Of a stretch of 64,000 nucleotides of DNA, positions 11,201 through 64,000 are shown piece by piece (position 1 is the first letter of the stretch; every line of letters starts with the position of its first letter). This DNA comes from Tetramitus jugosus (Eukaryota > Protista > Heterolobosea), in the NCBI GenBank assembly GCA_937625935.1, contig OW569393.1:62001-126000 (forward strand). Reading direction: 5' to 3'. The position numbers were made by a program, and so were the translations under genes. Under the pieces are notes generated by a model. The model searched no databases and had not been told where the DNA came from. It saw nothing but the letters and a program-made list of their open reading frames with translations.

Positions 11201-12247
11201 AAGTTGATTAATCAACCACTGGAGAATGATGCTGTTGATGGACGAAAACCAAGAAATGCTGCTATGATTGCGTGTCATCTCGGCATCTATGAAAGATTTG
11301 CAATTCTTTGGCCATATACTCAAGCTGTTGCAGAACAGTTTGATTGTCCAGCACAAATTGCTCTAGATAACAATGATCACCAATTCGCATTGTATTCTGT
11401 CCTCCATCATGCGATACTTCCAACCAAGGATCAATTACATAGGATAATTCGGAAGTGTTTGTCTCAACGGAGCTTGACTCCAGAAGTGTATGAGACTAAG
11501 TTTGTGACTTTGATGATGCAGACTGAAGAGAAACAAACAAAGCCATCGTGGCTTGAGATGTTGACACAAACACCATCAGACGCAGTTGATTCTGAAGAAC
11601 ACTACAGACTAAAGGGTTTGAGCACATTGCAATTAATGGTATTAGAGCTAGCTAATTACATGTTCGGTTGGCTTGTTCGTCACTACCGTGATGATCCATT
11701 GTTGAATCGTGCTGTGAGGACTATTGATATCAGAACAGGAGATACTCTCTTGCACATATTAACAAGCTCCACAAAATCAAGGGCTAGCATTGAGTTGTCT
11801 TCTATTCTATCCTCGATTGTAAACCAATTTACGTCGGATGGCGCCCCAATTGACAAAGCACAAAAATTCTCCAAACGAACAAAGGTTAAGCTCCCCTCTA
11901 TTGAGCACTTAAACACGAAAGAATTGACAGAATTCGTGAATATCCAGAACAAGTTTGGTCGAACTTGTCTCCATAATGTCTCGGCGAACTCTTTGTCACC
12001 TATTCTGCAGGATCTGCTCGTGCTTGGAGCCAACACTGAACTCAGGGACTCCCAGGGCAAAACACCTCAAGAGCTCATCACCAAGGAATCATTGACCGAC
12101 ATTATTACAAAATTTTTGAACAAGCGAGATGGTAAGAAGCCACAAAAGAGAAAGCAGGAGTACACAGTATATGACACTGAGGACGACGAAGAACATTCTT
12201 CGTCAACCAAGAAACCAAGAAAAAAAAGAAAGACAACCAAGAAATAA
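8258..12247 (+). CDS. F-box / LRR-like / ankyrin-repeat protein (dispersed member of the family at 50872-57692)
   Basis: F-box-like IPRELFHLIMQFVPAFPFYFMLRSVCSQW. LRR-like FPNVKHLKL and LTQIETLDI. Ankyrin motifs GNNVLHSAC, GQTPLEL, GRTCLH and GKTPQEL. Basic C-terminus resembling a nuclear localisation signal. Confidence 0.85.
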   Translation: MLSKAAVLGKNFKQDFTENEDDSDVPMTTETQVVGTTAVVDGDASGNVVQDNTSVTVEGGNDEEGANFHVFWQRDPERERDKILGFFVMDGQPIPRELFHLIMQFVPAFPFYFMLRSVCSQWLYEFQEQIYGNVTFLSLVDDGRPKYYFRDNGQTLVQFKPIGASGKKFSLDQAGQAQYYNRTPVFKFLANVFPNVKHLKLGLGSFTNRYDLTACFQSLVAKLTQIETLDILGATLTRSPTLNRRHWKYGSPLSVSELEVIARSLSSSLKSLNFVGVSLSTRSIDALKLFSEKGRTGTSVSNSQFSTALITVDIQRLTLHSIFLLQHSPYMNSSSFEWDRIKEVYTDFELTVVESDDNTLIQQATTVSYVDYLNYMSKKEGIFLACIGTHLRTDTDEAVEAIIDTAVREYPSFQPLLSLPGKVFQLVSQVKLNGPFIASHVHTAMKALELLTDPIRMKYPELVMDINSKFNWYANSPPTTLLGILIPIEGAVELLPAIIETYKPSLTVNGTRNYLVEIFTNASHLRRHLMDYFLSLEPELIVLGDTDGTINNEEKKLPLIQLFLSRDGLDYTLDDIKYLVRVGASLTHVDKFGNNVLHSACLTLDVDLVQYLLSVCPESMFFERNTEGQTPLELIFSPNKKGILLHTFLEAASKWPIFQDRKLSSYKTSCGNLLHSALVNPSVATIQWLLAHDFEANALNDREENALFYSRTESKKQIHSYRSQYRTYDTMVSLDHYIDPYAEELIKAGAKVDLENIDGRTIVTSALRNSNYQLINYIIRNPDISSKPLAVLLGPRMQHGFNALHFVFKTMVDIADPMKGMNKKQKAFTVGNYPIARHCALLCLEHYPEMLYERSELSDEEDLKGICGLSPLQILLEASKGLPLLNDLSINLRDIANKPVFASKDPNVIAPIPVLYLALEVALDIPMFDRLMTYTDNVLIRDETQETKPNLLHIAAERDASLCQCIIRHWKKKFKVKEELLKLINQPLENDAVDGRKPRNAAMIACHLGIYERFAILWPYTQAVAEQFDCPAQIALDNNDHQFALYSVLHHAILPTKDQLHRIIRKCLSQRSLTPEVYETKFVTLMMQTEEKQTKPSWLEMLTQTPSDAVDSEEHYRLKGLSTLQLMVLELANYMFGWLVRHYRDDPLLNRAVRTIDIRTGDTLLHILTSSTKSRASIELSSILSSIVNQFTSDGAPIDKAQKFSKRTKVKLPSIEHLNTKELTEFVNIQNKFGRTCLHNVSANSLSPILQDLLVLGANTELRDSQGKTPQELITKESLTDIITKFLNKRDGKKPQKRKQEYTVYDTEDDEEHSSSTKKPRKKRKTTKK

Positions 12248-16342: not shown

Positions 16343-19300
16343 TTACCTAATTTGAGGAATGTGAATTCGATCAGGGTTGTAAAAATTCTCTTGGTGGTCG
16401 CTCCACTGGCTGTCGGATGGTGTTTCTAGGTCGATAGGAAGAATGCCGACAAAGTCACGCAGATGGACAGCTGTTGGTTCAAGTACAGTCACACTCTTTG
16501 CCTTCCTTCTCTTGAACGCCAGTATGAGCACAATTAGGACCAACACGCAACAAATGGCTGCAATAGAACCAAATAGTACGGCTAAAATTGTGATAACTTT
16601 CGATTCTCTGCTCATGTTCATTGTAGACTCCTCTTTCTCAAAGTGAATCAGATTGTAAGAGTGAAGGGTTCTCTCTTTTGTTGCGGCATGGATTCGTCGG
16701 GCTGCTGTTTGAGCTACCTTGGATTGGATGTGGACGTAGCACAAGAGAGGCACACCTTGCACAACAAAATTACCGAGAGGTGAAGCACTAAAGGATATAC
16801 CTGCTCTCTCATTGTCATTAAAATTGAGAACCTGTGGAGCAAATGCGCTCTGAGACATCTCAGAATTGATCACTAATTGTTCCCATACTATCATTGAGGT
16901 GTTGCGCACTGTGCAACCTAGTAGACCAAGAGCTGGATCATATTGTGGCATTGGAGCATTGCTGTCATTCATACAACAAAGGAAAGCATTATTGATTGTA
17001 ATGTGAAGTGTTTCAGGCAGACCCACTCCACTTTGCGATTCCAAAGAAACAACAAGGTTTGGTTTCTCACTTGTGGCAAATACGGAATTCTCAGTCATTC
17101 CCTTCTTGTAGAATGTTGTCTTCGTAAATAGTGTTTCAATGATCGTGGGAGGAGGTATAGGTAGCTTATATCTTAACTTCAGAGGTATTTGAACTGGTAT
17201 TGCTTCAGATCCATGATCAGAAACTCTCAATCGGAACAAGTAAGTTGCTGTGTAATCGTCAGATTCAAAAGTGGAGAGAACCTCTACAGAAAACTCGTTC
17301 TTTGCAGATGGGAGCTTGGTGATTGTGAACGAGGGATTTTCGATAGGAAGTGAAGTGATCTCTTCTATCATCATGCCTTCCTCCAATAGAAGACTGAATT
17401 TCACATATAATCGACTATTTCTAATGGAGATAACTTCTTGTCTTAAGATAATTGCTAAATCAGAGCTATCAATAGTAATGAGAGAGGAACTTCCGCCATC
17501 TAGCATTAGTTGCACAGTTTGGACAAGCTGATAGTTTTCAATTCTACAGACTCCATAGTTCAAGGACGAGCTGAGAACATACGCTATATTCACTGGGAAC
17601 TTAGCAGTCCAGAATAATCCGCTCGGATCAAGGATAGTTTCTGTGGACGGATCTAATAGAATCTCTGTCACATTTCTCTTGATCGTTAAGCTCGTTGAAC
17701 ATAAATCGGTCATCGAATCAAACATCAAGTGATGGTCATTAAGTGCATTACAATTGGTAAGCTCAGCAGTTCCAACATAAACTGAGATGTTAGATGCGGA
17801 GATTGCATTGGGAATTACAACCACCATACCTAAAATTTCATTATCGTAGAATATTTCGCTCAGTTCAGGTGATTCTGACAACAACTGATAACCACATTCG
17901 CTCTTCTCTCTTGCTTGACAAGTTGTACCTGTCCAACCCGGCGCGCACATGTCACATTGATCAGAAGCAGAACATGATTCACAATTTTCAAGGCAGGAAT
18001 TCTCGCATTGAGAACCATATCGACCAGCCACACAAACCGAACAGTTTGTGAGGTATTCACAGCTCGAGCAATTAGGCATACAAATAGGAACGGAGCAAGA
18101 AGGTCCAGACCAACCTTCATTGCACTTCGAGCATAGATCTGGACCCAAACACTTTTGGCACCCAGAAGGACACACTGAATCACATGAATCACCATATAAC
18201 CCTGCCTCACATTCTAAACAGCGATCAGGTGAATTACATGATAGACAACCGATGGGGCAGTTTTGAGCAGTACAATTAGAACCTGACCAACCCAAAGCGC
18301 ATACCTCACACACTCCAGTGTCAGAGCATTTTTCACAGTTCAAAGGACAAGGCACAGCACAATTTAAATCAACTCCATAGTACCCATCGGAGCACTTGGT
18401 ACATAAAAAGGGTGTTGTGCAGCTAGAACAATTTGATGGACATATTGGATCACACTTGGGACCTGCATAACCCTCCTGACAAACGCACGTATCAAAATCA
18501 ACACATGCTCCATTTCTGGAGCAAACGGATACGTTGCCACTTCGAACACCAAAGCAAGTGAATTCGTCACAGTTCGCTCCCACCCACGGCTGCTCACAGG
18601 TGCACTTACCAACCTCTGTACAGTTTCCACGACCAGAGCAAACTCGGGGATCGATATCCATCATATTAGAGCAAACTCTCCTTTCTATCATGAACATTGC
18701 TTTAGGAGTCATGAAAAACTCCATTGGCTGGGTGTATGTCGTAACAGCGCCCGTGAATCTAGAATAAGAGGTACTACCGAAAGTTAATCCTCTTCCTGAG
18801 TGCGTTGTGAAAACCACAGCGCCATTAGAGTAAGACATTCTCAAAATTCTTTCGTTGTTCCATACGCCGGAATTGAAAAGTCGAGGATATAAACCAGTTC
18901 CAGAAAAAGCAGGCCCAGACGCTCCACTCACATAGACTAATCCTTCACTATCTAAGAACAGAGAAAATGATACCGAAGTAAGGACCTGTACGAGTTTGGC
19001 ATTGGCCATATATGGTCCTTTGTCCAATTTCACAGGAGTATACTGATACCCTGAAGAACTATATCCGTAATATCCCCGTTGTATATCTCCAAAACCATAA
19101 ATGTCATTATTTAACATTATGCAAATCACATGTGCCGTACCTTGAGGATCACAACTACAGGTAAGGACGTTGGATAAAATTGGCCTGTAGTCATTTATAA
19201 TGGCGTTCAAATTCCCCAAACTAAGGACTCCAAGCCTATCAAATCCAAGACCGTAGAGAGTATGATTACTGATAATAAAAGAGTACTCATTTCCAATAAT

Positions 19301-47610: not shown

Positions 47611-48243
47611 ATGGTGTGTGGGTCGGTTTTTCTTGTGTTTTTCAGAGAAGGAACAAACAATGATAGGATTGGAACCTGCGAATGTGGAGAGGATTTCTCA
47701 GAACGGTCGCGAAATGATCAAATACTGTGAAGTTCCGAAAGCAATTGGCACCCTCCAGCTCGTGGGTAACGATTCAAAGTGGGAAAAATTCGAATCAGCT
47801 GTCCCGAAATCAACTGTCATACGTATGAGAATCGATCCTTCCAAATGACACCCCTTGCAAACCAGGCAAGAAACTTACGACTAATACAAGCCGTCTTCAG
47901 ATCATCCTTGGTCAGGCCACAGACAGAATTCCAACATTTTTTGTTTCACTAAAATGGCAGCCCTGTGACCATCTGAATTCGTTTACCAGTATACTTTGCT
48001 CCGTAATACCTATCCCTGATTATCTTCACCTTTAGCATATGAAATGCCTGACCGGGCTCCTGTGCTCTTGCTTCCTGTATGCAGAAGAGGAATCCAAGGG
48101 AGGTAAGTCATACTCGTTTACGAAAACAAAACATATTTAGATGAGCAGGCAGTAATTGATTGACCTGATCATCGGATAATGGGAAAAACTTGCAAAACAA
48201 ACAGGTCAAAGAAAAACGATCAAAAAAATCAAACAACATTATC

Positions 48244-50798
48244 ATGGGCAAAAAAAAACATCAACAACAAGTAGACACTACCACCACCACCACCACTACT
48301 ACTACTACTCTTCAAAAGAAGAAATCCTCATCATCAACATGTAGTCACTTCCCACCCAAATCCTTCAACATTGGAAAAATTCAAAAAAAATTTCCCGCCC
48401 AAATGCAATGCGGTAATTGTCCCGCCTCCGCCTCCACCTCCGCCACCCATAAGAAAAAATCATCAGCAACAACATTATACTATCATTTATCACATGATGA
48501 ATTTCAATGTGAATATCACATGAATGAAACCATGGGTCATTTCGATGATTTTCATGATGATTCCAAGAAGCAAAAAAAACAACAACAAAAAAAACAGCAA
48601 CAAAAAAAACTACAAAAAAATAGTAGTAATGGACTTGATTTGTTCTTGTCCATGAAAACACTTGATTTCACATGTAGTTTATGCACTACCACCACCAATA
48701 ACAACAATAGTAGTAGTGGTTTACAAATGGAACAATTGAAAAATGAAAAATCATATCAATTATTGATTCGAGCACTAGTGAAAAAGTATCATAATGATGA
48801 TTCAGTGTGGACATGCCTATCAAAGTCACATTCATCTTCTGTTTCCACTTTTCTCTCTTCTCTTGTGGATGATATTACTCCTACTGTGAATGTCGGACAA
48901 ATTATGAACAAGGATGAAAATAATAGTCAACAACAACAAACAGTAAATATGATAACAACAACAACAATAGAAGAAGAAGAGGGTAAACAGGTAGTCAGAG
49001 GATTAATGAACCTTGGTAATTCATGTTTTTTCAATTCTGTCATGCAATGCATGGCTCACACACGTCCACTACTCGCTCATTTCTTGCCTACGACTTTATT
49101 CGCAAGATGGACTGAAAAACAAAGTAATGACAATACGAAAAATACGAAAAAAATGAATGATGATGAAAAAAAGGAAGATGGCAATGATGGAACATCAACA
49201 ACAACAAGAGAGGTAGCAGCTGCAGTATGGTGTGGACCATTGTCTCTCTCACTCAAACTCTTTTATGAAGATTATTATTCCAACAACAACAATATTAACA
49301 ATAATAATAATAGTCATGATTCGAATGCGACAATGAAAAAAGTGCAAAAAAAAATCATTTTTCATCGACAACAACAACAACAGCTGTTGTGAATCCAGTG
49401 AGATTATTTAAACAAGTCATCAAAATTGTACCCACCTTTCGAGGCTATCAACAACAAGACGCACAGGAATTTCTCCGGTTTTTCACTTCTTTTCTGTGCG
49501 ATGAATTCTCGAGTCGGAGTAATAACAACAACAACAAGGATGAGGAGAAGATGATGATGAAAAATGTGATTCAAGAATTGTTTCAGTGTGAGCAATCGTC
49601 GTGCATCACATGCATGAACTGTAAGAAATCATCTCGCATCACGGAACCCATTTTTGATGTTTCTATTCCGATTCCTAATTCTCCTACTGGCGCATCGGAG
49701 AATGATAATGGCAGCGAGGAAGAAATGAAGCGAGAGATTGAGTTGATTCAAAAATTGAAAAACGAGTATCATGTGGAGCACTTGTTGGACCCTGTTCCCA
49801 TTCAACAATACTTGTTAAATAGAAATGGTCGGAGTAATAATAATAACAACTACAATAGCAGTGGTAAAAGGACGTCGATAGCAAGTGGTAGTGGAACGAC
49901 GACGACAATTGAACAATGTTTGTGGAATTATATCAAGAGTGAAGTATTGATGGGTGATAATGGATATTTGTGTGATTATTGCAGTAGTGATGATCATAGT
50001 ACTACTATAATTGAACAGACAACGACAAGTAGTAGTACTAGTAGTAGTGTTACGAGTGATGATGATGATGTGAGTGGTGAGATGATGGATGAGTCAAAGA
50101 CGACAACTGGTAGTGAGAAGGGTAGTACTGTTGTTGTTGTTGGTGATGATGATGATCAAAATCAAGTGAGTGATACAGCAGATGATGACGATGATGATGA
50201 TGAAAAGAAGGAAACAACTGCACAAGATGATGAAACATCTTCCAACAACAAAAAGAAGGAGGAGAATGAAACATCGGTCAATAGTGAAAAAACCAAACAA
50301 ACGAGAATCAAGAGAACCGCACTCAAACAATTGTCATTTCATTCGTGTCCAAGAATCCTTACGATTCATTTAAAGAGATTTGTAGAAGACAAACAAAAAA
50401 GAGATGATTCGTCAATGTTGTCAATGGGAAAAAAGAATCGTCTTCGTCATTCATCGTACATGAGTGGTGGTTTCAGAAAAGATGATACACGAGTGGAGAT
50501 GAGCAGAAGAATCATGTTGCGTCCATTTTTGAGCAATGATTCAATTGAAAGACAAAAAACATCACCGGATGATGAAATTTGTTATCGATTGTATGGTATT
50601 GTAGAGCATTCCGGTTCAATGAACTCGGGTCACTATGTCGCGTATGTGAGAAGACAAACAACGTCAAGAGATGATACAAATGATGACGACGACGATGATG
50701 AATGGTGTTACATGAGTGATAGTAAGATAGTGCCTGGATTAAAATGGGATCAAGTACGGAAAGCACAGGCCTACATTGCCTTTTATGAAAGAATATAA
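48244..50798 (+). CDS. Ubiquitin-specific protease (USP16/45-like) with an apparent -1 frameshift at about 49336-49354
   Basis: ORF1 has a degenerate ZnF-UBP and the Cys box GLMNLGNSCFFNSVMQ. The overlapping ORF2 has QQQDAQEFL, LTIHLKRF and the His box YGIVEHSGSMNSGHYVAYV. One extra A in either A-run joins them. Confidence 0.85.
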
Positions 50799-50871: not shown

Positions 50872-52713
50872 TCACAACGTTTTTCCTCTCATGCTGAAAC
50901 CCTTGTCGAGCAACCATCGTAGCGTGAGTATTTCCGGCCTTAGCAATGCAGCGTGGAGTAAGTTGCCACACGATGTTGGATAATCTTTGAATAGTCGATC
51001 CTTGAAGCAAGGTAAAGTGATTGCTTCTCCAAGAAACGGGACAAGAATATCGATTCCGCGAGAATTGTGGAAAATTTGTTCCATGGCAGTTTGTCCCTTC
51101 TTGTTTCGTACATACAGTAAACTCTCTGGACAAACTGAAAGCAAGTACTTCACTAAATTGATGTCAACCATTCGACAGGCTGAGTGAAGAACAGTATTTC
51201 CATCATTGTCCACTCGCGTGAGTGAAGCTCCTGCTGATACCAAGAACTTGACATCCTCCAAGCATTGTTCAGAGTATTGTCGAGAGAGGAATATCTGGAT
51301 GAGTGGGACATCTTTGCGATCATTACTGATGATTCCATTCAAATCTCCCAGCGTGATCAACTCAGGCTCCAAAGACAACAGGTGTTCCATCAACTCAGTT
51401 CTGATTGGAGAGTATGGGAGATTGGATGCTTCCACGAGATAATTTTGCACACCATTGACAGCCATGGAAGGCTTGTACGTCTCTATGATTGTCTTGATCA
51501 TGGATAAATCATGGTCATTTGAGCATTGTGCGATCAAGAAACTCATGAGGGATCTAGAAGTCGAATCACCTTCTCTAACAACGGTACTGTCAACGTTAAA
51601 CACCAATTCGGGATACTTCACTCTTCTTACATCTGTTAGTAGCTCCAAGACTCTAAGCACTGGGAGCCCGCATTTGACAACAAATCCTGCATCCAATTTA
51701 GTCTGTGGAGCTAGAAGCACATTCTTTTTTCCACGTACAGAGTGAATTGGTTGAAAAGAATTATATTCTCGCACACTCAGATCAATAGTTGCTTCCAGTA
51801 TTTCATGAGTATCTATTCTCATATTGTGACGCATATGCGACAAGACAATTCCCTCCTTATCAGACATGTAATTCAAGTAATCGATATACGATACGACAGG
51901 CACTTGTAAATTTTGGGGATTATGTAGCGATTCCACCACTGACACCTCAAAATGAGAGAACAATTGTTTGACATGTTCCAAATGGGCATTCAATTCATCA
52001 TGATAATCATCTTCGAGTAAAAATAAGTAAGGCAGAGTTAAGCGCTCGATATCCACTAAAATGTCTTTCTGAGCAACCCAATAGCGATCTCCTTTCTTTG
52101 CCGAAAAAATGTCCAGGAACTGCACGTCACAATACAGAGCCGCTCCAATAACATTTAAATTCTTGGTAGAAATTGGTAATGAACAAGCAAGCATCTCCAA
52201 TTCATATTCTCCCAACACGGAGTGATCTGGATTGTCAAAGTGTGCCTGGTTCGTGCCCATCAGGTCCAATATTTCCAGTTGAGTCAATTTCGGCAACATG
52301 ATATTCACCCAGTGATAGAATTGACTAGGACTAAGTGAACCGAAACCCAATCGAAGATGTTTCACGTTGGGAAACGATTTGGTCAAGATTTCAAACAGAC
52401 GAGTGTCACAACCATCTGGATCGTTTCTTCCGATTAAACCAATAGGTTGATAGCGCACTAATGTTTCTTGGTAATGATCCGGTCGGACGTAGTACTTTGG
52501 CTTGCCATCGTCCACCAGACTCAAATATTCAACCTTGGCATAAATATGGTCATGAAATTCACTTTGCCACTGTCGACAAACAGATCTCAACATGAAATAA
52601 AAGGGAAATGCAGGAATGAATGACATGGTCAAATGAAAGATTTCTCTCGGAAACAATTGACCTTCACTGCTCACGACAAAAAGGTTCGTATGGTTGTTGC
52701 TGGCATCACACAT
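50872..52713 (-). CDS. F-box/LRR/ankyrin family member, C-terminally truncated (short form or pseudogene)
   Basis: Collinear with 52808-56245 from the F-box to WLLDKGF, then homology is lost and the ORF stops (SMRGKTL*). Confidence 0.75.
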   Translation of the reverse strand: MCDASNNHTNLFVVSSEGQLFPREIFHLTMSFIPAFPFYFMLRSVCRQWQSEFHDHIYAKVEYLSLVDDGKPKYYVRPDHYQETLVRYQPIGLIGRNDPDGCDTRLFEILTKSFPNVKHLRLGFGSLSPSQFYHWVNIMLPKLTQLEILDLMGTNQAHFDNPDHSVLGEYELEMLACSLPISTKNLNVIGAALYCDVQFLDIFSAKKGDRYWVAQKDILVDIERLTLPYLFLLEDDYHDELNAHLEHVKQLFSHFEVSVVESLHNPQNLQVPVVSYIDYLNYMSDKEGIVLSHMRHNMRIDTHEILEATIDLSVREYNSFQPIHSVRGKKNVLLAPQTKLDAGFVVKCGLPVLRVLELLTDVRRVKYPELVFNVDSTVVREGDSTSRSLMSFLIAQCSNDHDLSMIKTIIETYKPSMAVNGVQNYLVEASNLPYSPIRTELMEHLLSLEPELITLGDLNGIISNDRKDVPLIQIFLSRQYSEQCLEDVKFLVSAGASLTRVDNDGNTVLHSACRMVDINLVKYLLSVCPESLLYVRNKKGQTAMEQIFHNSRGIDILVPFLGEAITLPCFKDRLFKDYPTSCGNLLHAALLRPEILTLRWLLDKGFSMRGKTL

Positions 52714-52807
52714 TTTTCTTGTTTGTTCTTATTTGTAAGGAACTTCAATTTGTTTTCGGATTCCGGAAGTTTAAACTAAAAACAAGGAGTTGATTATGCA
52801 AGAGTTA

Positions 52808-55800
52808 CTATTCGCTTGTTTTGATTCTTTTTCTTTGTCTGCTGGGGTTGCCATTATCATTCTCATAAGCTTCTTCGTTCTTCTTCGTCAACATGCTGAT
52901 TACCTTCCGCTTCTTTTCTGATGGCTTACTAGTGAACCCTTCGAGCAAGTTCAACATGGCGTTTCCTGTTCCTGAGTCAGCAGATTTCAACGAATGATCC
53001 AACAGTGGATCATCACTGTACTGATGAACGAGCCAATTGAATATGGCTGAAGCCTCCTCTGAAACAATGAGTTGCAATGTGCTCAACGACTTAACATTGA
53101 GTCGTTCTGCTGTCTCAGACGAAGTTTGCACAAACAATTCAAGCCATGATGGCGTAGATTGCTTTTTCTCAACATGATTCAGCACTGAAATAATCCCACT
53201 CTGATTGAATGTATTTACACGTTGTTCTACCAACATCTTTCGAATGGTCTCGTGCAAACGAACCTTGGATGGAGTGATACCAAGTTTTGTGACGGCAGCC
53301 AATGCAAATTCAAAATGATTATTTTCGAAAGCAACCTGAACTGGACAGTCAAACTGCTCTGCAACAGCTTTCATGAATGGCCAGAGCAATAAAAAGATTG
53401 CATATTGATTAAAACGACAGGCAATCAGAGCAGCGTTCCTTGGTCTTTGGCCATCAACACAATTTTCGAGTGGTTGATTGACGAATTGAGAAAAGTCCTT
53501 CTTAAATCGATTCTTCCAGTGCTTGATGATGCACTTACACATAGAAATATCCCTTTCTGCGGCAATATGCAAAAGATTAGGTTTCGTTTGTTGTGTTTCA
53601 TCTCGTGCTAGGATATTGCGAGTAGATTTCATCAAATTGTTGAAGAGTGCGTTTTCTGATGCCATTTCATGTGATTCGCCCAATGCGAGGAATATGACAG
53701 GAATAGGAGCAATCACCTCGGGATCCTTGCTTATAAAAACTGGCTGATTGGCAATATCATTCAACTTGATCGATAACTCCCTCAATATGTGTAAACCATT
53801 ACGTGCCTTGAGCAAGATTTGAAGGGGACTAACACAAGAGAAGTTTTGTTGAATTGATTCGTCAGATTTTTCATAGAGCATTCCAGGGTGATGCTTAAGA
53901 CAAAGTTTTGCGCAGCTTCTCACAACAGAGTAAACAGCAGCTGTTCCCTTTTCATCTCTATCCGGCTCATCGACAATTTCGATCATCTTCTGGATGATAT
54001 AATGCAAAGCATTCAATCCATGTTTCATTCTTGGAGCCAAGAGTTTTGACAATGGCGTGGAGCATATCGATGGAGTTTGGATAATGTTATTAATCAGCGA
54101 ATAGTTCTGATGAAGAAGCGCTGATGTAACAACAGTTTCTCCTTCAGTGTTCTCAAGATCAACTTTTGCTCCTGCTTTGATCAATTCCAAAGCACATTCA
54201 TCAACAAATTCAGCTTGGTTTTCACATGAAATTTCAAAACTATACTGACTTCCTTCCGAGAAACAATAGAACAATGCATTTTCTCCTTTCTCATTCAATG
54301 CATTGGCATCAAAACCATTATTTAGAAGCCACTGGATGGCTTCGAGATGAGGACTACCAGAGGCAACATGCAATAAAGTACCACGCGATGTTTGATAATC
54401 TTTAAGCGGTTGATCCTTGAAGAGAGGTAGATTGGCAACTTCTTGAAGGAACAATAGCCGGAGACCAATGTCTCCATGAGGAGAGTGTGGTGAGAATATC
54501 AACTCGATTGGAGTTTCACCCTTACTATTTCTGTCAAATATTAAACTCTCTGGACAAACTGAAAGCAAGTACTTCACTAAATTGATGTCAACCATTCGAC
54601 AGGCTGAGTGAAGAACATTGTTTCCATCATTGTCCACTTGTGTGAGTGAAGCTCCTGATGACACCAAGAGCTTGATATCCTCCAAACACTCTACTGAGTA
54701 ATGTCGAGAGAGCAGTATTTGAATGATTGGACAATCTTTTTGATCATCATTGATGATTCCATTCAAATCTCCGAGAGTGATTAACTCAGGCTTCTCTGAC
54801 AACAAGTATTTAATCAAGTCAGTTCGGACAGGAGAGTATGGGAGAGAGGTAATGGCCGACGCAAGATAATTTTGCACGCCATTGATGGCCATGGAAGGTT
54901 TGTAAGTCTCTATGGTTGTCTTGAGCATATGAAACATTTGAACATTAGAACATTGTGAGATTAATTCCTGAAGAGGAGATAGCTTCGTGTATCCTCTGTC
55001 AAAGGTACTGTCAATGTTGAACACCAATTCAGGATACTTCATTCGACTCGGGTCTGTGAGCAACCTAAGTGTACTGGGATAGAATATGTGCTGGAATACA
55101 AACATTGAGTCCAAAATGGTTTGTGGCTCGAGTTGAAACACCTTCTCAGTTGCTGTTGAAAGAGCGCGAAGTGGTTGGAAATGAGAATACTCTCGCACCA
55201 CTATCTCAATCACTGCTTCAATTATTTCGTCAGAGTTTCTTCGATTAATGTGTTCCATGTACGATAATACAACTCCCTCTTTCCTTGACATGTAATTCAA
55301 AAAATCGACATAGGATTTCACTGGTAGATCCGATGCATGTTGATTATGTAAAGACTCGACCACTGACACGTCAAAATGTGAATAATTTTCCTTGAGAGAC
55401 TCCCAATCATTGATCGCCAATGGAATACTCATTTGATCCAAGAACAGGTAAGACAAATATAAGTTTTGAATGTTCACACATGGTGCATTGTTTTGCAAGG
55501 TTGAAAACCATGGTGGGAGAGACGGCGATTCTGTCATTGATCTTCGTCCCTTGTCCGAAAACATCTTTAACCCTGCTAACATATCGTTACTGTCATTAAA
55601 AGCAACACCAATAATTCTAAGGGTCTTGGTCGAACTTGGCAACGAGGAAACAATCATTTCCAGTTTAAGTCGAGCCATTACTGGATACAAATATCGAGAG
55701 TTATGATTCGCTGTTCCTAGAATATCCAATGATTGCAGTTGAGTCATCTTTGGCAGCATTGTCTTCACACATTGTTCGAAGTGAATGAATTCCAGAGCGT

Positions 55801-56245
55801 TCAAGCCTAATCGAAGGTGCTTCACATTGGGAAACAGATGGGCCAACTTCTCAAACAGATACACTTTATCATAAGTTCGAGAATCATTATCGCTCAATCG
55901 AACTTTTGTCCCAATTCGACCAATGGGTTTAAATTGAACCAACGATGGTTGACCGTCATCATCATTATCTTTTCTGAAATAATATTTTGGCTTTCCATCA
56001 TCCACCAGATTCAAATGTTCAACCTTGGCATAAAGATGGTCTTGAAATTCACTGAGCCACTGTCGACAAACAGATCTCAACATGAAATAAAAGGGAAATG
56101 CAGGAATGAACTGCATAATCGAATGAAACATGTCTCTGGGAATGAGTTGGTGATGAACGACAAAAAAATCAGGGTCCTTTGGTCCAAAGTCATTGTTCTT
56201 GAAATTGCTCTCAGTCAGCAGGTGCTGACCGTCATACTCTTCCAT
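52808..56245 (-). CDS. F-box/LRR/ankyrin family member, near full length
   Basis: Collinear with 8258-12247 over most of its length. F-box IPRDMFHSIMQFIPAFPFYFMLRSVCRQW, ankyrin motifs and a basic RQRKRIK tail. Confidence 0.85.
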   Translation of the reverse strand: MEEYDGQHLLTESNFKNNDFGPKDPDFFVVHHQLIPRDMFHSIMQFIPAFPFYFMLRSVCRQWLSEFQDHLYAKVEHLNLVDDGKPKYYFRKDNDDDGQPSLVQFKPIGRIGTKVRLSDNDSRTYDKVYLFEKLAHLFPNVKHLRLGLNALEFIHFEQCVKTMLPKMTQLQSLDILGTANHNSRYLYPVMARLKLEMIVSSLPSSTKTLRIIGVAFNDSNDMLAGLKMFSDKGRRSMTESPSLPPWFSTLQNNAPCVNIQNLYLSYLFLDQMSIPLAINDWESLKENYSHFDVSVVESLHNQHASDLPVKSYVDFLNYMSRKEGVVLSYMEHINRRNSDEIIEAVIEIVVREYSHFQPLRALSTATEKVFQLEPQTILDSMFVFQHIFYPSTLRLLTDPSRMKYPELVFNIDSTFDRGYTKLSPLQELISQCSNVQMFHMLKTTIETYKPSMAINGVQNYLASAITSLPYSPVRTDLIKYLLSEKPELITLGDLNGIINDDQKDCPIIQILLSRHYSVECLEDIKLLVSSGASLTQVDNDGNNVLHSACRMVDINLVKYLLSVCPESLIFDRNSKGETPIELIFSPHSPHGDIGLRLLFLQEVANLPLFKDQPLKDYQTSRGTLLHVASGSPHLEAIQWLLNNGFDANALNEKGENALFYCFSEGSQYSFEISCENQAEFVDECALELIKAGAKVDLENTEGETVVTSALLHQNYSLINNIIQTPSICSTPLSKLLAPRMKHGLNALHYIIQKMIEIVDEPDRDEKGTAAVYSVVRSCAKLCLKHHPGMLYEKSDESIQQNFSCVSPLQILLKARNGLHILRELSIKLNDIANQPVFISKDPEVIAPIPVIFLALGESHEMASENALFNNLMKSTRNILARDETQQTKPNLLHIAAERDISMCKCIIKHWKNRFKKDFSQFVNQPLENCVDGQRPRNAALIACRFNQYAIFLLLWPFMKAVAEQFDCPVQVAFENNHFEFALAAVTKLGITPSKVRLHETIRKMLVEQRVNTFNQSGIISVLNHVEKKQSTPSWLELFVQTSSETAERLNVKSLSTLQLIVSEEASAIFNWLVHQYSDDPLLDHSLKSADSGTGNAMLNLLEGFTSKPSEKKRKVISMLTKKNEEAYENDNGNPSRQRKRIKTSE

Positions 56246-56498
56246 GATCACTGGCAATCTTCTTCAATAAACTTGTTGGGGAAAAGAATCGAATACAGAA
56301 AACCGGAGTGTTCCATGTGGAAGGAGCTATTGCGGAAACAGAACCGGAGTTTGTTTTTTGGCGCCAACAGCGGAGATTTTCGGCAATGTTTTGTACTCAC
56401 TATCTATGTTTACACTGGTACATGCTGAGTGAAGAATATTGTCTTAACCAACAATCTTTTGTATTTGAACACTTGTTTATTGGTAGATTAGGGCATCA

Positions 56499-57692: not shown

Positions 57693-58525
57693 TCCTCAGT
57701 TTTCTTCTTTCATTTCTGCCTTATTTTGTTGTACAAATAATGAGTTCGTTCCAACAGAGTTGTTCCATCAAGAAAATATCACAGATTATTTTAGTCGTGT
57801 TTCAATCCGAGCTGTGTGGCGAAGTTTTGTACATCATCTCACAGTGAACAAAACTGTAGATGCTGAGCCGAAGAAAATTCCCGGGTGGCATCACATAAGG
57901 GATAAATCTAGCCATGATTTCAAAATCAACTAAATATATTAAGAAAACTTCATTTTACCAATCTCCATCTCTTACTTGATTCTTATCATGGTACAATGAT
58001 TTCACTTGTGATGCTGAGAGCTGAATAGATGAATCATCTTGTTGTGGCCATGCGTACTTGTCCTTATCGATTTGGCTCACTGATTTCACTTGATTCAGCA
58101 CGTTGGATTGGTCAATACTGTTTTGAGGCGATTCATTGTACACGTCAAACCATGGATATCCATATGAGGAGTAGGTTTGAGCTGTAATGGGTGTAGGAGG
58201 GGCCTTCATTCCTGTAATTTGCTCATACATTTCACTATTGACTATTCGGACGTAGATACGAGCCGAACAGGTTTGATCCCAGAACTCCAATCCGAAATCA
58301 TCCTTGGTAATCTCTTGTTTCATGCTGCCACCGGCTGAGAGAGACATTTCCTTTGCTTCTTGTTTAGGAACAATCATTTGACTGGCAATCTTTCTCTGTG
58401 GTTGTTCATGTATCATGCTTGCTTGTTGTTGTTGCATAGGTGCACTAAACAAGTCGGCAGATGGAAGTGGGGCGGCAGAAAAGCTGAAACATTCAGCTGA
58501 AGTTGGTGCTGAATAGCTTGGTGCA

Positions 58526-58606
58526 GGCGGAAATCTTAAAAGCAGGAAGGGAAACCTTATGCGCAGTAAACCTGAGAAGCAGTAACTTTACTGCCGGGAA
58601 AGCAGT
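58526..58606 (+). repeat. Left terminal inverted repeat
   Basis: GGCGG start, repeated GCAG motifs, and core AAGCAGTAACTTTACTG at 58577-58593. Confidence 0.85.
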
Positions 58607-58677
58607 AAAAATAGTTATCGTATCTGCAATCAACAGATACGAAAGCTAAAAACAATATCAAGATCGTTTCTAATAAA

Positions 58678-59550
58678 ATGAATAAACAACAGCTTCTCTC
58701 CTACATATCCAACAATTTCAACCGTATACGCTTCATTACTCTTCAGTATGATGATGAAGAATTAGAAAGAATTAGAGTACGACATTCCCCAACACAGCTC
58801 TCTGATATGCGTAGTAGAAGCATGACTCAACCTCAAAACACAACCACTACTGACTCACATACGGTCCAATCATCAACAAATCCACAAAATTCATACATTG
58901 AGTTACTAAGACTTATTCACACCGAGAGGAATTTTCAAATCAGGATATTTTTGATGGGTTCCATATCAACAGTCATTGAAATGATTGCTCTTTCGCGTCA
59001 GTATGCAAACACCCTAAAATCTTTGAACGCATTGTTCAACTATCAACTTCGACGCAGATGCAATCATGGTCTAGGAAATCAGTACCATAGTCGTTGTGAA
59101 GTGTGTTCCAATGCAATTTACATTATAAACATGTACCCAGAAACTCATATTTACTGGAGAAGTATTTTTTCGCTACTGGAGCATGAGCTGACATATCCTG
59201 CCAGAAACATAACAACAACCATGGAACAGAACAATCTCTATTCGTGGATGTTTAACAAAAATCTATCAAAGCTGAGTGACTTAATCGTAACAGACAAGAC
59301 ATGTCTATCTAACAGCATTAAGGTGGGAAAATTGATACAAGCCATTTATGAGAGAATAGATGTCTTGATACACTTTAAAACCAGTATCAACCACGTGGCT
59401 CGATATATACCTTCAGATGACATAGCATTTGAGAATATATGCACACAACTGGTTAAGTATATAACACCACGTGACACTAATACACATACCATAGAGCATA
59501 CGCTGAACAATGAAACTTATGAAGACATTACAATAAACTTTCACCATTAA
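58678..59550 (+). CDS. Transposon accessory ORF of unknown function (290 aa)
   Basis: Intact ORF inside the TIRs, co-oriented with and ending 37 bp before the transposase. Possible Zn-binding motif CNH...HSRCEVC. Confidence 0.75.
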   Translation: MNKQQLLSYISNNFNRIRFITLQYDDEELERIRVRHSPTQLSDMRSRSMTQPQNTTTTDSHTVQSSTNPQNSYIELLRLIHTERNFQIRIFLMGSISTVIEMIALSRQYANTLKSLNALFNYQLRRRCNHGLGNQYHSRCEVCSNAIYIINMYPETHIYWRSIFSLLEHELTYPARNITTTMEQNNLYSWMFNKNLSKLSDLIVTDKTCLSNSIKVGKLIQAIYERIDVLIHFKTSINHVARYIPSDDIAFENICTQLVKYITPRDTNTHTIEHTLNNETYEDITINFHH

Positions 59551-59587
59551 TTTTCCGATCCCAATTTTTTCAAAACACACATAAAAC

Positions 59588-62500
59588 ATGAACACAAAAA
59601 ACAATCACACACACACCTACAATAGAAGAAGACGTAGAAGAAATGCTACTAACAAAGAAGCAAATACACAAACAGCTTCGCCTATCAACTTGAATAATAT
59701 CATTCATCAATCTCTGTGTGACTTGGAAAGGTATGGCATGGCAGAATTGAGGACTATGTGTAGACAACGAGGGCTCAACGATGTATCCAACAATAAGTCA
59801 AAACTAATTACAAGACTACTACCGTATATTGAGAATTTATCATTCGATAAATCAGAGCATCATGAGATTGTACAATTTCTGAGCGAATTGGGTCTCAGTA
59901 CATTGGGAAGCCTTGAGGAGAAGAGAAGTCGTCTTGAACACCATTTTCATTTAAGGGAAGATAAAAGAGAGTATTCACAACAAGAAGAGAAGGAAACTGA
60001 TGGAAAGAATTGTCATGAATACATTGAGAATTCTCTTGAGGAACCCCGAACCCCACCTAAGCGCAAGAGGGAATTAATTACTCCGACTACTACTCCTGAA
60101 CACAAAATGAGAGCAACAGACGTTCACGAAGGATCAGGATATTTCAATATATCTATAAGTCACAGAGATGTCGACATACTTAAAGAAAAGAAGGAACTGA
60201 ATGACAATATTATTGATTACTGGTTGAAATATTTGGAAGATAACCAGGGAAAAGAAAACGTTCTGATACTGAATTCTCAAGAGACCAAGTTAATGACGTA
60301 TGATACCAAGAGATGTGCAATGAAAATCAGAAAACACATCCAAGTGTTCAGCAACAAAGTCGTATTGTTGCCTTTTTGTATTTCCAACCATTGGGTATTA
60401 TATGCAATTTGCAATTTAGACATGGGAGATCCAATCCTACTAATGCTGAACAGTTTGACGCAATCAGTTAGAAACGACGTTCTGGGATATATTCAGAACT
60501 TTCTATCAGAAAGAGCACAATTAGAAAAAGATGATGAACGTTCTTTAGAAGTGATCATAGCCGATACCTCCAAGCAGAGAAATAGCTATGACTGTGGTCT
60601 TTATATACTCAAGTACGCCGAACTTCTCATTCATACTTTTGGGGAACACGGCAGAATTGCGAGAGATTTCTCATGCTTCTTTCCTGAATCATCTATCGAA
60701 AAACTAAGATGCGATATACTTCGGTCTATGCCCCAAGATACGGTATCAACCTTGAATGAGAGCCCTCATGATACTAAGCCAGTTCCATGTACCAACATTT
60801 TTCAAAAAGAGATTTCAAACTTCGAGAAATCCCTGTCTGTTCTTTTGAAAGAAGAGAGTTCTGTTTCTGTTGACGACTATAATTATGGTGAATGGACAGT
60901 AGTTCATTCATGTTCGGTTACTGATGTTGATTCGTTTCGAAGATCATTTCCGTTTTTACAAGGATCATTTAAAAGTCAAGGATGGAAAAGAAACAAATTT
61001 TTGGAAGGATTTGAACCAAACCAGAAGGTATTTCACCAACATAATTCTTGGCCAAATCCTGTGACATCAGGCAGATGGATATACAAATGTCCAGAGAGCT
61101 ATGGAAAATCTGTTTATGCCATGTATGAATACTTTAATTGCACTAATCTTCTTTGTCAGGAGTCTGAATGCAACGCAATGTGGATGTGGCAGATGTCCTA
61201 TAAAGACGTCCCGGTTGTTTCGGTTAAGTGTTTTGGTAGGCACGGGAGCAAATGGAGACCGACACCTAACTTAATGCGCGGAGTCTCAGTTGAACAAAAG
61301 CTCATTGCCAAAGAGCAAAAACAGAAGTACAGAAACACCACCAGTTGTATAGCTAATTCTCTAGATGCATCTAAAAAAAAGCTGCAGAATTTTTTTGACC
61401 ATGAGTATCGTAAGAGGTTGCTTCATCCCAATCATTTCGAGGCGTTCAAGCTAATGTTGATTCAAATTATGGAAAAGGAGGACAGAGATCTGGAAATAAT
61501 AGTCCCGAATGACGATCTAGAATCATGCACAATTACCAATTTCTCAGTTTTGCTACTATCGAAGAACTTAATTGAGTACGCACGTCAAAACGGAAGATTA
61601 TTTGAAATTATTGGTCACGATGGAGTGTACAAACTGACAGATCAAAAGGTTCCTATCAACCTGTATACTACTGTTACCAAAAAAGATTTTAGAGGGATAG
61701 TTCTTGGTTATTCGATCGCAAGCGACAATACCCAGAAGAAACTGGAACCATTGATCAAGAGCTTTCTTCTTTACCTGAGAAGAACATATCCTACAGAGTA
61801 CAAACAACCACATTTCTCTGTCGACGAAGAAAAGAGTCAGATCAATGCTTTAAAATCACTACATCTCAGATTTAATATATGTCGTTTTCATTTGGTTAGA
61901 TCTTGGAAGAAACATGTGGTCAAAAAAGTAGATGTAGATCACAGAGGAACAGTGGCTGAATGTTTACTGCGATTGTTGGCTACTAAGAATAATGATGAAT
62001 ATAAGGAGGAGTATGATCATTTTACTGAGATATGTTCGGAAAGAGCTCCTCAATTTCTACAGTACTATAATACAGAGCATCATGATTGGGCTGAATACTG
62101 GAATTTGAGTGATCGATGTCTAAGAAACAATAGCTTGGGTTCGACAAATAATGTAACAGAAAGTGCAATAAGACTGCTTCAAAAAGATGTTTCTTCGAGA
62201 TTCAAACGATTTGATTCTTTATTAGAACATATAATGAAATTCACTCATGACCAGTTAGGAAAGCATAAGTTCAATCCTTCTCATATGAACGAGACCAAGA
62301 AGCAATTACAAGATCGTTTGGAGAAGGCGCAAGATTTATATGAACAAGGAAAAGTGATAGAAATGCTTGAAAGTCCGTTTATGTTTAACGTCGCTTCATA
62401 TGGAGTAGATATTCAGTATTGTTTCTGTACTTGTGGAGATTATAGTACTAAAATGAGAATATGCAAGCATATTAATGCTGGATTTATATATTTTGCTGTG

Positions 62501-63049
62501 AAATTAGGAATGAAAAATCTACCTAAAGACGCTTATGACTTCCATCAGGAAATATTAGACACTCTCCAGAGATATCAGCAAACTAATTTTCTCGATAAAG
62601 AGTTGGAAGAGAGAGGTATCGCGGGTAGATCTAAGAAGGTTGCCAATCCAACAAGAAGATCTGGGAGAAAAGTAACAAATAAGAGTCTCAAAGCAGTTGC
62701 AGCTCTTTCTCAATACGAACCATCGGAAATAGAGAGAATTATAGGTGTTGCGAAAGATGCCATGGGGAGAGTCTTCTATCGTGTTGTTTGGGTGGACGAT
62801 CAAAAAGAGAAATGGATAGATGTATTGCTTATAGAAGGAGTCAAGTATATGGTCAAACAATTTCTTTGTGATCTAAATGATACTATTAACTCTACATCTG
62901 CTGGAGAATTAAACGACAAAGAGGTCTATTCGATCATTAAGGAGAAAGGAAAATATCAGATAGAATTATTTGATAGTGCCGATTTGTCAGATATTGATTT
63001 CACTAATGTTGTAGCCTGCAAAATATTCATGAGTAGTTTTGCTTTATAA
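59588..63049 (+). CDS. Multidomain MULE transposase (SAP-like x2, Ulp1/C48 protease, Zn finger, DDE, SWIM, chromo-like)
   Basis: MULE core HDGVYK...SVDEE...ICRFH...TNNVTES. SWIM CTC...CKH. Ulp1 motifs LNDNIIDYW, NHW and QRNSYDCGLY. SAP-like ELRTMCRQRGL..NKSKLITRL. Chromo-like IERIIG...YRVVW...KWI. Confidence 0.9.
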   Translation: MNTKNNHTHTYNRRRRRRNATNKEANTQTASPINLNNIIHQSLCDLERYGMAELRTMCRQRGLNDVSNNKSKLITRLLPYIENLSFDKSEHHEIVQFLSELGLSTLGSLEEKRSRLEHHFHLREDKREYSQQEEKETDGKNCHEYIENSLEEPRTPPKRKRELITPTTTPEHKMRATDVHEGSGYFNISISHRDVDILKEKKELNDNIIDYWLKYLEDNQGKENVLILNSQETKLMTYDTKRCAMKIRKHIQVFSNKVVLLPFCISNHWVLYAICNLDMGDPILLMLNSLTQSVRNDVLGYIQNFLSERAQLEKDDERSLEVIIADTSKQRNSYDCGLYILKYAELLIHTFGEHGRIARDFSCFFPESSIEKLRCDILRSMPQDTVSTLNESPHDTKPVPCTNIFQKEISNFEKSLSVLLKEESSVSVDDYNYGEWTVVHSCSVTDVDSFRRSFPFLQGSFKSQGWKRNKFLEGFEPNQKVFHQHNSWPNPVTSGRWIYKCPESYGKSVYAMYEYFNCTNLLCQESECNAMWMWQMSYKDVPVVSVKCFGRHGSKWRPTPNLMRGVSVEQKLIAKEQKQKYRNTTSCIANSLDASKKKLQNFFDHEYRKRLLHPNHFEAFKLMLIQIMEKEDRDLEIIVPNDDLESCTITNFSVLLLSKNLIEYARQNGRLFEIIGHDGVYKLTDQKVPINLYTTVTKKDFRGIVLGYSIASDNTQKKLEPLIKSFLLYLRRTYPTEYKQPHFSVDEEKSQINALKSLHLRFNICRFHLVRSWKKHVVKKVDVDHRGTVAECLLRLLATKNNDEYKEEYDHFTEICSERAPQFLQYYNTEHHDWAEYWNLSDRCLRNNSLGSTNNVTESAIRLLQKDVSSRFKRFDSLLEHIMKFTHDQLGKHKFNPSHMNETKKQLQDRLEKAQDLYEQGKVIEMLESPFMFNVASYGVDIQYCFCTCGDYSTKMRICKHINAGFIYFAVKLGMKNLPKDAYDFHQEILDTLQRYQQTNFLDKELEERGIAGRSKKVANPTRRSGRKVTNKSLKAVAALSQYEPSEIERIIGVAKDAMGRVFYRVVWVDDQKEKWIDVLLIEGVKYMVKQFLCDLNDTINSTSAGELNDKEVYSIIKEKGKYQIELFDSADLSDIDFTNVVACKIFMSSFAL

Positions 63050-63073
63050 AATTTCTGCTTTTCATCTTTTATG

Positions 63074-63153
63074 ACTGCCTTTTAGTCAGTAAAGTTACTG
63101 CTTTTCAAAATTCCTGCTTTTCCGTTTCCGTTTCTGCCTTTCATCTCCCTGCC
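63074..63153 (-). repeat. Right terminal inverted repeat
   Basis: Reverse complement starts GGCAG with GCAG motifs in register with the left end (one indel). Core CAGTAAAGTTACTGCTT at 63087-63103. Confidence 0.85.
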
Positions 63154-64000
63154 TTGGTGCAGAGGGTGGAGGTGGACATGGCATATCACAGCAGGAGGAG
63201 AAACAATCGTCAAGCATTGAAAAGGATTCTTCTCCTCCGCTAACCCACTCAGAGGACACTGGTAGTGTTGGTGCTCGCTGAGGGAATTTAAGAACTCTGT
63301 CACTTTCCTTGCTGTCAAACACAATCATTTGAATTCCACCAAATTTCTCTTCGCCAGTCACTTGAGCTTCTACACTGTATCCAGATCCCAGTGGCATGGC
63401 CACAAATTGCTTGATGGTGCCTTCGCCACCAGCATTGATACCATCGAGCCAAGGCTGCTTTGGAATCGTAATGTAATCATCCTTTTCCAGTGAATTGCTC
63501 CACGGTTTTCCATTGATGGCATTCACCTTTCCCACTGCAATTTTCATTGCCTTTGGTCGTTCATTGGGGCACTGGAACTGCATCCACATGGCTTCTCTCT
63601 GATGCATGGGAAAGAAGACACCGCCAGTCTTTCTCCATTCAGCAGGAACTTTGTCAAGGTAGTCATCTACTTTGCACAGTGGGAATTGACCGAGAGAGGG
63701 AGGTAGTGGATAAACTTTACCGTCATCTGGGATCCTAAGTGTTCTATGGAATAGGATAGAACAAGAGTTTTGAAGTGGGTTTCCAATCTCGTTAATCCTG
63801 AGATAATTTCCTTCAATTTCAATCGTCAATTGTTTATTGTTGTTCATCATTTAGCGGTGCAGCTGTTGTTGGTCTGTGTTGTTGATTGTTCCTTGTCGTT
63901 CTCGCGAGCTTTTGAGTTATAACCAGATCGCGGCTCTTCGATCAAGTTCCAAGAACTTTGGTGTTTGTTCCAAGGAGAAGGAGAGTTGAAATGTCGTTAA

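Follow-up and report, generated by a model that had tools for sequence, protein, structure and literature searches.

We analysed a 64,000-nt stretch of the Tetramitus jugosus genome (assembly GCA_937625935.1, contig OW569393.1, here C50, positions 62001-126000 of the forward strand; this whole stretch is hereafter the window, numbered from its first letter) and conclude, with a probability that we put at roughly 0.8, that its open reading frame (ORF) at 59588-63049 encodes the transposase of a Mutator-like element (MULE), autonomous and active in the recent past, that spans 58527-63152. In this transposase, NLS-like basic clusters, SAP motifs, a Ulp1-type protease, a CCCH finger, a DDE core, a SWIM finger and a chromodomain-like pair follow one another in a single chain. 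The assembly comprises 26.35 Mb in 56 contigs, and the ORFs of the window are tightly packed and mostly intron-less. The original prediction, made from the letters of the window alone, had placed six modules in the frame; the ORF is intact, and every position given there maps to the residue claimed.

The element and its boundaries are the following.

58517-58526, unstranded: left copy of the target-site duplication, (C)TTGGTGCAG; the identical 10 letters follow the right end
58527-63152, plus strand: whole transposon, 4626 bp, with ends GCGG...CTGC; four deletion derivatives share both exact termini
58678-59550, plus strand: ORF1, 290 residues, second gene of the element, conserved in a relative
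59588-63049, plus strand: transposase ORF, 1153 residues, stop-free; its basic N-terminal start is kept in relatives
63153-63162, unstranded: right copy of the target-site duplication, matching the left copy; empty-site contigs contain the 10 letters once
G000:C23:492390-492808, C50:32812-33230, C23:27870-28288 and C13:139509-139927: deletion derivatives, 97-98% identity, each with its own 9-10-bp duplication

The ends were set at 58527 and 63152 because the derivatives start and stop at those bases. A DNA search of the assembly found element DNA at four other sites in the form of internal-deletion derivatives of about 420 bp, each composed of the left 296 bp and the right 121 bp of the element with an AGT filler at the deletion joint. 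Their flanks are all different, and each has its own direct duplication (9 bp, in one case 10 bp); across the five insertions, the duplications measure 9 bp in three and 10 matching letters in two. A 9-bp target duplication is distinctive of MULEs (10.1101/2023.01.02.522487) and, with about 9 bp (8-11) taken as the criterion, the 9-10 bp seen here falls within the MULE range. The subterminal regions are GCAG-rich and loosely complementary, forming an inverted repeat of 52 nt at 75%.

The insertion interrupts a minus-strand host ORF of about 420 codons, dividing it into two parts (57955-58526 and 63153-63850), and both flanks give one open minus-strand frame when 4636 nt are removed and the two parts are translated. 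Contigs from two public runs, X1 and X4, join 58516 to 63153 with the ten letters shared, as in an uninterrupted target allele, and differ from the window flanks by in-frame indels (+9, +9, -6, +12). We considered whether the element had been removed from these contigs as a spliced intron; their own in-frame flank indels fit an allele better than spliced RNA. The insertion site looks heterozygous or polymorphic, and the joint that defines the derivatives (58822 to 63032) occurs at higher depth in the same reads as the empty site. Together, the defined ends, the target duplications, the second gene, the near-identical derivatives and the empty allele identify the element as a recently active autonomous MULE.

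Further element-related DNA was observed elsewhere. One piece, at C52:303227-303457, has diverged further (80%). Run X4, which comes from another sample, yielded a 2629-nt contig identical to the left part of the element (58527-61155) at about ten times the flank depth and with different adjoining sequence, which suggests extra copies, or expression, in that sample. An older, degraded Ulp1-bearing family member, L015, is found 43 kb upstream on the same contig (G000:C50:15948-19086, minus strand); it shows about 30-48% protein identity, has several stop codons and keeps the Asp of the protease triad.

Within the transposase, the modules are arranged as follows, all on the plus strand.

59717-59947: two SAP/helix-extended-helix motifs (residues 44-82 and 88-120), preceded by an RRRRRR cluster
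60143-60712: Ulp1/SENP-type C48 cysteine-protease domain (residues 186-375), with H268, W269, N288, Q330 and C336, and E203 at a clamp position
60878-61267: beta-rich DNA-binding region with a CCCH finger (C518, C523, C528, H552), WRKY/FAR1-like by position
61508-62197: MULE/IS256-type RNase-H-fold DDE core, with D678, D746, C765xxH768 and E858 (TNNvTE)
62378-62512: SWIM zinc finger (C947, C949, C959, H961)
62705-62899: predicted chromodomain fold (residues 1040-1104), with cage positions S1046/W1068/D1071
62900-63046: second three-strand-plus-helix unit (residues 1105-1153), chromo/chromoshadow-like by topology only, in the predicted structure

By its motifs and predicted fold the catalytic core is of the Mutator/IS256 type, an assignment that follows from the D678/D746/E858 motifs, from profile links to Pfam-MULE proteins and from the structural match to ISCth4. 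D678 (codon at 61619), D746 (61823), C765xxH768 (61880) and E858 (62159) fall in the same alignment columns as their counterparts in Pfam-MULE-positive lancelet proteins, in the contexts GxDxxxK, D followed by CxxH, and TNNxxE; this alignment and the ISCth4 match bear out the MULE triad with CxxH that had been read from the sequence. When a family profile built from five sequences was run against 1.84 billion representatives, it matched 5371 proteins, and those with a DDE core include the Branchiostoma proteins P0074, found at E 1.7e-18, and P0072, which match Pfam MULE at 4e-20. The MULE assignment is thus transitive, leading from the family profile through P0074 and P0072 to Pfam MULE. Scores against PF10551, the Pfam MULE family, were 14.9-17.1 bits for the paralogues L004 and L007, 26.6 for P0012 and 72 for the lancelet relatives, the only ones above the cut-off. 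Pfam MULE was matched by 10 and SWIM by 7 of the 29 aligned relatives. When an AlphaFold model of residues 420-1153 (predicted local distance difference test score, pLDDT, 87.8) was compared with the PDB by Foldseek, the five best matches were all ISCth4 chains (E 9e-7 to 1e-4; the best 8.9e-7, probability 1.00), with the P element and Hermes next at 1e-3.

The four residues of the CCCH finger are invariant in a 5-sequence alignment, share columns with the Pfam FAR1/ZSWIM3_N finger of lancelet MULEs in a 37-sequence alignment, and sit in a beta-rich part of the confidently predicted structure. The SWIM motif, C947-x-C949-x9-C959-x-H961, is near-invariant in 29 sequences; against PF04434 (cut-off 19.6 bits) the transposase scores 11.1 bits (E 0.3) and its relative P0008 27.5 bits. 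Likewise, the SAP region scores 17.4 bits when the full-length protein is searched and 20.6 bits when the segment is cut out first, against a PF02037 cut-off of 23.9 bits, and Pfam SAP is matched by eight of nine family N-termini (best E 2.6e-8). The best PDB match of the family N-terminal profile is the SAP domain of Hcc-1. The second motif (residues 88-120) is conserved, and its sole profile support is a second SAP_new25 stretch. The SAP and SWIM assignments are therefore supported through relatives.

The protease domain is matched by Pfam Peptidase_C48 (PF02902) over residues 203-353 at E 7.7e-16 (59 bits, cut-off 20.7), in agreement with the Ulp1-type protease predicted. Among PDB sequences it matches SENP7, SENP1, yeast Ulp1 and SENP2 at 6e-9 to 1e-6, and the NEDD8 protease SENP8 at 6e-3. 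The domain keeps H268, W269, Q330 and C336, and of the family copies examined only one degraded fragment lacks the full set of His, Gln and Cys; the roles of these residues, and the two aromatic clamps over the Gly-Gly tunnel, are those that we take them to have by analogy with Ulp1/SENP structures. The profile tests that the original prediction had proposed for its domains gave a divided result: Peptidase_C48 passes, but the transposase itself stays below the cut-off for SAP and SWIM and has no MULE or Chromo match, although relatives pass.

The C-terminus is predicted to fold as a chromodomain followed by a second, similar unit. Pfam Chromo is reached or approached at the homologous position in four of 20 aligned relatives (best 6.6e-7), P0040 scoring 25.9 bits (9.3e-6), and 20 of the 22 PDB sequences matched by the family C-terminal profile are chromodomains (best E 0.0017). 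In the AlphaFold model of residues 1036-1153 (pLDDT 89.6), a three-stranded sheet is packed on a C-terminal helix, and the model superposes on the chromodomains of Rhino, MPP8 and SUV39H1 with Z 6.1-6.4 and a root-mean-square deviation of 1.5-2.1 Å over 57-61 residues. The Foldseek E-values of this small, 118-residue model are weak (0.02-0.2), and we used target-normalised template modelling scores (0.7-0.8), VIA Z-scores and an exhaustive search. In the exhaustive comparison with 48,161 chains, the top 37 were nearly all chromo or chromoshadow domains, and of the 10 rows of the ESM Atlas structure search, the 9 that carry an annotation are all chromodomain clusters. Chromo or chromoshadow domains thus come at the top of three structure libraries, as expected from the chromo-like domain originally proposed. 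The further claim that the transposase reads chromatin is doubtful, because S1046, W1068 and D1071 stand in place of the three aromatics of the cage. The corresponding residues of P0079 are Y/W/Y, so that one aromatic of three is left here, and the Ulp1-bearing branch as a whole has S or T at the first position and D or G at the third, with two of the three aromatics lost.

To place this architecture, we compared it with its relatives. A word-indexed homologue search returned three, all from one public run; two of them, P0001 (52% identity) and P0002 (42%), have the same whole architecture over 95-96% of the transposase, and the full SAP-Ulp1-finger-DDE-SWIM-chromo order was found only in this genome and in that run. 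Across P0001, P0002 and the transposase, the modules are 33-75% identical and two of the three inter-domain linkers only 11-38%; the Ulp1 domain is in frame in each and 34-48% identical, the three proteins being 42-54% identical overall. The T. jugosus genome also encodes the paralogue L004, an intact protein of 993 residues with SAP, finger, DDE, SWIM and the C-terminal pair, without Ulp1.

The original prediction had called for a phylogeny of the DDE core against MULE and KDZ families. In our tree, the three Ulp1 bearers form one clade (support 99/98) that is sister to L004 (100/100); together they lie inside a group of metagenomic proteins, most of which have the C-terminal module as well, and the lancelet MULEs fall in a distant clade. 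In the tree of Ulp1 domains, those of the element group with the three SENP-like genes of the genome (98/92), and the Ulp1 of lancelet MULEs lies elsewhere. The base architecture of SAP, finger, DDE, SWIM and C-terminal chromodomain is that of a wider MULE clade known only from protist-type metagenome contigs. Judging from the trees, one sub-branch of it gained the Ulp1 domain, at a place between SAP and finger, and, since both trees separate the element from the lancelet MULEs, this capture was independent of the lancelet fusions. Its source was apparently, and most simply, a host-type SENP gene.

Members of this wider chromo-MULE clade (P0008, P0011, P0012, P0022, P0023, P0026, P0040, P0056 and P0079, as well as L004) resemble the element in their finger-DDE-SWIM core and in a two-unit C-terminal module at the same position. 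L004 also has SAP; unlike the element, none has Ulp1, and some have a full aromatic cage. Except for L004, these sequences come from metagenome and Logan contigs.

Fusions of Ulp1 with MULE transposases have precedents. Bao, Kapitonov and Jurka (PMC2836005) listed Ulp1 domains for Mutator elements of hydra and lancelet (Repbase MuDR families) and for those of plants, and aligned 'Mutator TPases' with Ulp1. The Branchiostoma proteins XP_035667341.1 and XP_078703251.1 resemble the element as single chains with a FAR1/WRKY-type finger, a MULE DDE core, SWIM, Peptidase_C48 and a chromatin-associated module. However, that module is a PHD or a PWWP3A/B C-terminal domain in the lancelet MULEs and a chromo domain in the element, their Ulp1 is C-terminal to SWIM whereas that of the element is N-terminal to the finger, and no SAP was detected in them. 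In plant MULEs the Ulp1 protease is mostly encoded by a separate ORF, and we know of no chromo or SAP modules in plant Ulp1 MULE families. As cited in PMC2836005, plant KI-MULEs and CUMULE-type MULEs carry Ulp1-like genes (Hoen 2006; van Leeuwen 2007); they are Mutator-superfamily elements with a C48 protease domain, and are likened to the element here by description only. No plant member was present among the best 150 of the 5371 profile matches. Two ESM Atlas clusters, one from diatoms with MULE and Peptidase_C48 and one named after the FB-NOF protein with PHD and C48, are no more than leads, at a score of 0.83 each; a diatom MULE with an E3 ligase gene has also been described. A large MULE survey (PMC6446971) makes no mention of Ulp1, SAP or chromo, and a literature search found no description of a MULE with a chromodomain. 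The single-chain MULE-Ulp1 fusion is thus already known, and it is this domain combination that is new within that kind. Accordingly, the proposal of an undescribed MULE lineage stands as regards the full architecture, seen only here and in one public run, and the chromodomain, but not as regards the Ulp1-Mutator fusion, which was already catalogued.

More distant systems share single features with the element. The catalytic region finds its closest structural counterpart in ISCth4 (IS256; PDB 6xgx, 6xg8), which shows only 12-16% identity and lacks SAP, Ulp1, SWIM and chromo. IS256 is the established prokaryotic kin of Mutator, and ISCth4 is a bacterial copy-out/paste-in element. Chromovirus (Ty3/Gypsy) integrases and GEN1 likewise have a chromodomain fold C-terminal to a DNA-processing enzyme, and both appeared in our structure searches (integrase-chromo clusters at rows 3-5 and 10 of the ESM Atlas results; the GEN1 chromodomain at Z 4.4 in the exhaustive comparison). 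Their catalytic families differ from that of the element, the cage of which is incomplete. SWIM, SAP and Ulp1 also recur as accessory modules in Zisupton elements, and such a likeness had been suggested for this transposase. Zisupton/KDZ elements are defined by the KDZ domain PF18758 and by 8-bp duplications (PMC9297572, PMC12730594; the 8-bp figure from PMC12730594). We found no PF18758 in the transposase (E <= 1) or in the 29 relatives (E <= 0.01), and the missing KDZ domain, the MULE DDE core and duplications of 9-10 bp rather than 8 bp rule out a Zisupton identity.

In the reading that we favour, the DDE core would perform cut-and-paste transposition, with the SAP motifs and the CCCH finger binding the GCAG-rich ends of the element. 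The protease module would act on, or at least dock to, SUMO-modified host repair or chromatin factors at donor and target sites, and the cage-poor chromo pair would serve as a DNA or protein tether or as an oligomerisation module, not as a methyl-lysine reader. Several points weigh against this reading. The assembly holds one full-length copy, and no RNA run for the organism was found among public runs. The transposase itself has no match at E <= 1 to PF10551 (cut-off 27.6 bits), nor has its C-terminus to PF00385 (Chromo; cut-off 25.1 bits), and the MULE and Chromo assignments come from relatives, profiles and predicted structures. The protease has N288 at the position of the catalytic Asp, a residue that is Asp in SENP7, P0001, the C9 fragment, the degraded C50 copy and the SENP-like genes of the genome; in addition, E203 occupies a clamp position at which SENP7 has Phe, and P0002 and P0003 have Trp. 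Protease activity of this copy is, by these residues, uncertain, and the roles given to the SAP, Ulp1 and chromo units are ones that we infer.

These same substitutions could mean that the Ulp1 domain is catalytically dead or decaying here and is kept as a SUMO-binding or structural spacer, or is a host-gene passenger that contributes nothing, which we regard as a minor but real possibility. The sister transposase L004 is intact without any Ulp1, and the Ulp1 tree puts the domain among host-type SENPs; MULEs are also known to capture host gene fragments (PMC6446971). Nevertheless, the domain has stayed in frame and 34-48% identical while linkers fall to 11-23%, and the His, Gln and Cys persist in all copies examined but one degraded fragment. 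An Asn as third catalytic member is, in papain, compatible with cysteine-protease catalysis. A fully working protease next to a histone reader would instead suit a built-in anti-silencing device, in which the chromodomain reads repressive histone methylation and Ulp1 removes, at the sites of the element itself, silencing marks that depend on SUMO. The Ulp1 domain is by score SENP1/2/7-like and not NEDD8-specific, with His, Gln and Cys kept, a SUMO-like gene is present in the genome, and in the distant relatives P0040 and P0079 the chromodomain has the canonical Y/W/Y and passes Pfam; transposon-borne enzymes have also been proposed to counter silencing, for instance the TET/JBP genes of fungal transposons (PMC12730594). 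Two of the three cage aromatics are gone, however, from the whole Ulp1-bearing sub-branch, and this copy of the protease has D288N and W/F203E, which makes such a device unlikely.

Two other proposals bear on the chain as a whole. The modular layout and the poorly conserved linkers on both sides of Ulp1 are the sole support for a polyprotein that Ulp1 would cut into a SAP/protease part and a transposase, the self-processing raised by the original prediction. Ulp1/SENP proteases act on folded ubiquitin-like domains, cleaving after their Gly-Gly, but the 1153 residues contain no Gly-Gly dipeptide and the Pfam matches of the transposase include no ubiquitin-like module, and we consider self-processing very improbable. 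Even less credible is the domestication of a MULE into an immobile host gene, as with the FAR1/FHY3 and ZSWIM genes: the single full-length copy and the long, intact, intron-less ORF would suit it, but not the defined ends and target duplication, the near-identical derivatives at four sites with duplications of their own, the location inside the coding frame of another gene or the existence of an empty allele. An autonomous, recently active MULE with accessory modules in its transposase thus remains our preferred reading.

The second gene of the element, ORF1, is 39% identical (E 2e-73) to the ORF found at the same position upstream of P0001 on contig L009. A Pfam scan of ORF1 gave no family match; the protein contains a Cys/His-rich stretch, RRRCNH...HSRCEVC.

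Elsewhere in the window, two ORFs of 400 and 469 residues at 48190-50798 overlap by 4 nt and each encode one half of a UCH ubiquitin hydrolase domain, N-terminal in the first and C-terminal in the second, which may reflect a frameshift, an intron or a split gene. In a 1675-residue protein encoded at 16343-21373 (minus strand), a class-3 lipase domain occurs together with teneurin-type EGF repeats and an RCC1-like propeller, and several large ankyrin-repeat proteins are encoded near this gene, at 8258-12247 and 50872-56257.

Transposases fused to ubiquitin-like-protein proteases have arisen repeatedly, in Mutator and Ginger among other superfamilies, and to our knowledge no agreed role has been established for them. 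The element offers a compact natural system for testing such a role, with one intact autonomous copy, four short and near-identical derivatives usable as reporters and an empty site that is still segregating, and the same genome also holds a sister transposase without the protease. Should the accessory modules prove inert, it would be an ordinary, well-preserved MULE. At the other extreme, the chromodomain pair may pick or hold chromatin sites at which the built-in SUMO protease disarms SUMO-dependent repair or silencing, the element being the founding example of a widespread, undescribed protist 'chromo-MULE' clade; we think this combination improbable. A MULE clade with a C-terminal chromodomain extends to cut-and-paste transposases the chromodomain-plus-integrase theme of the chromoviruses.

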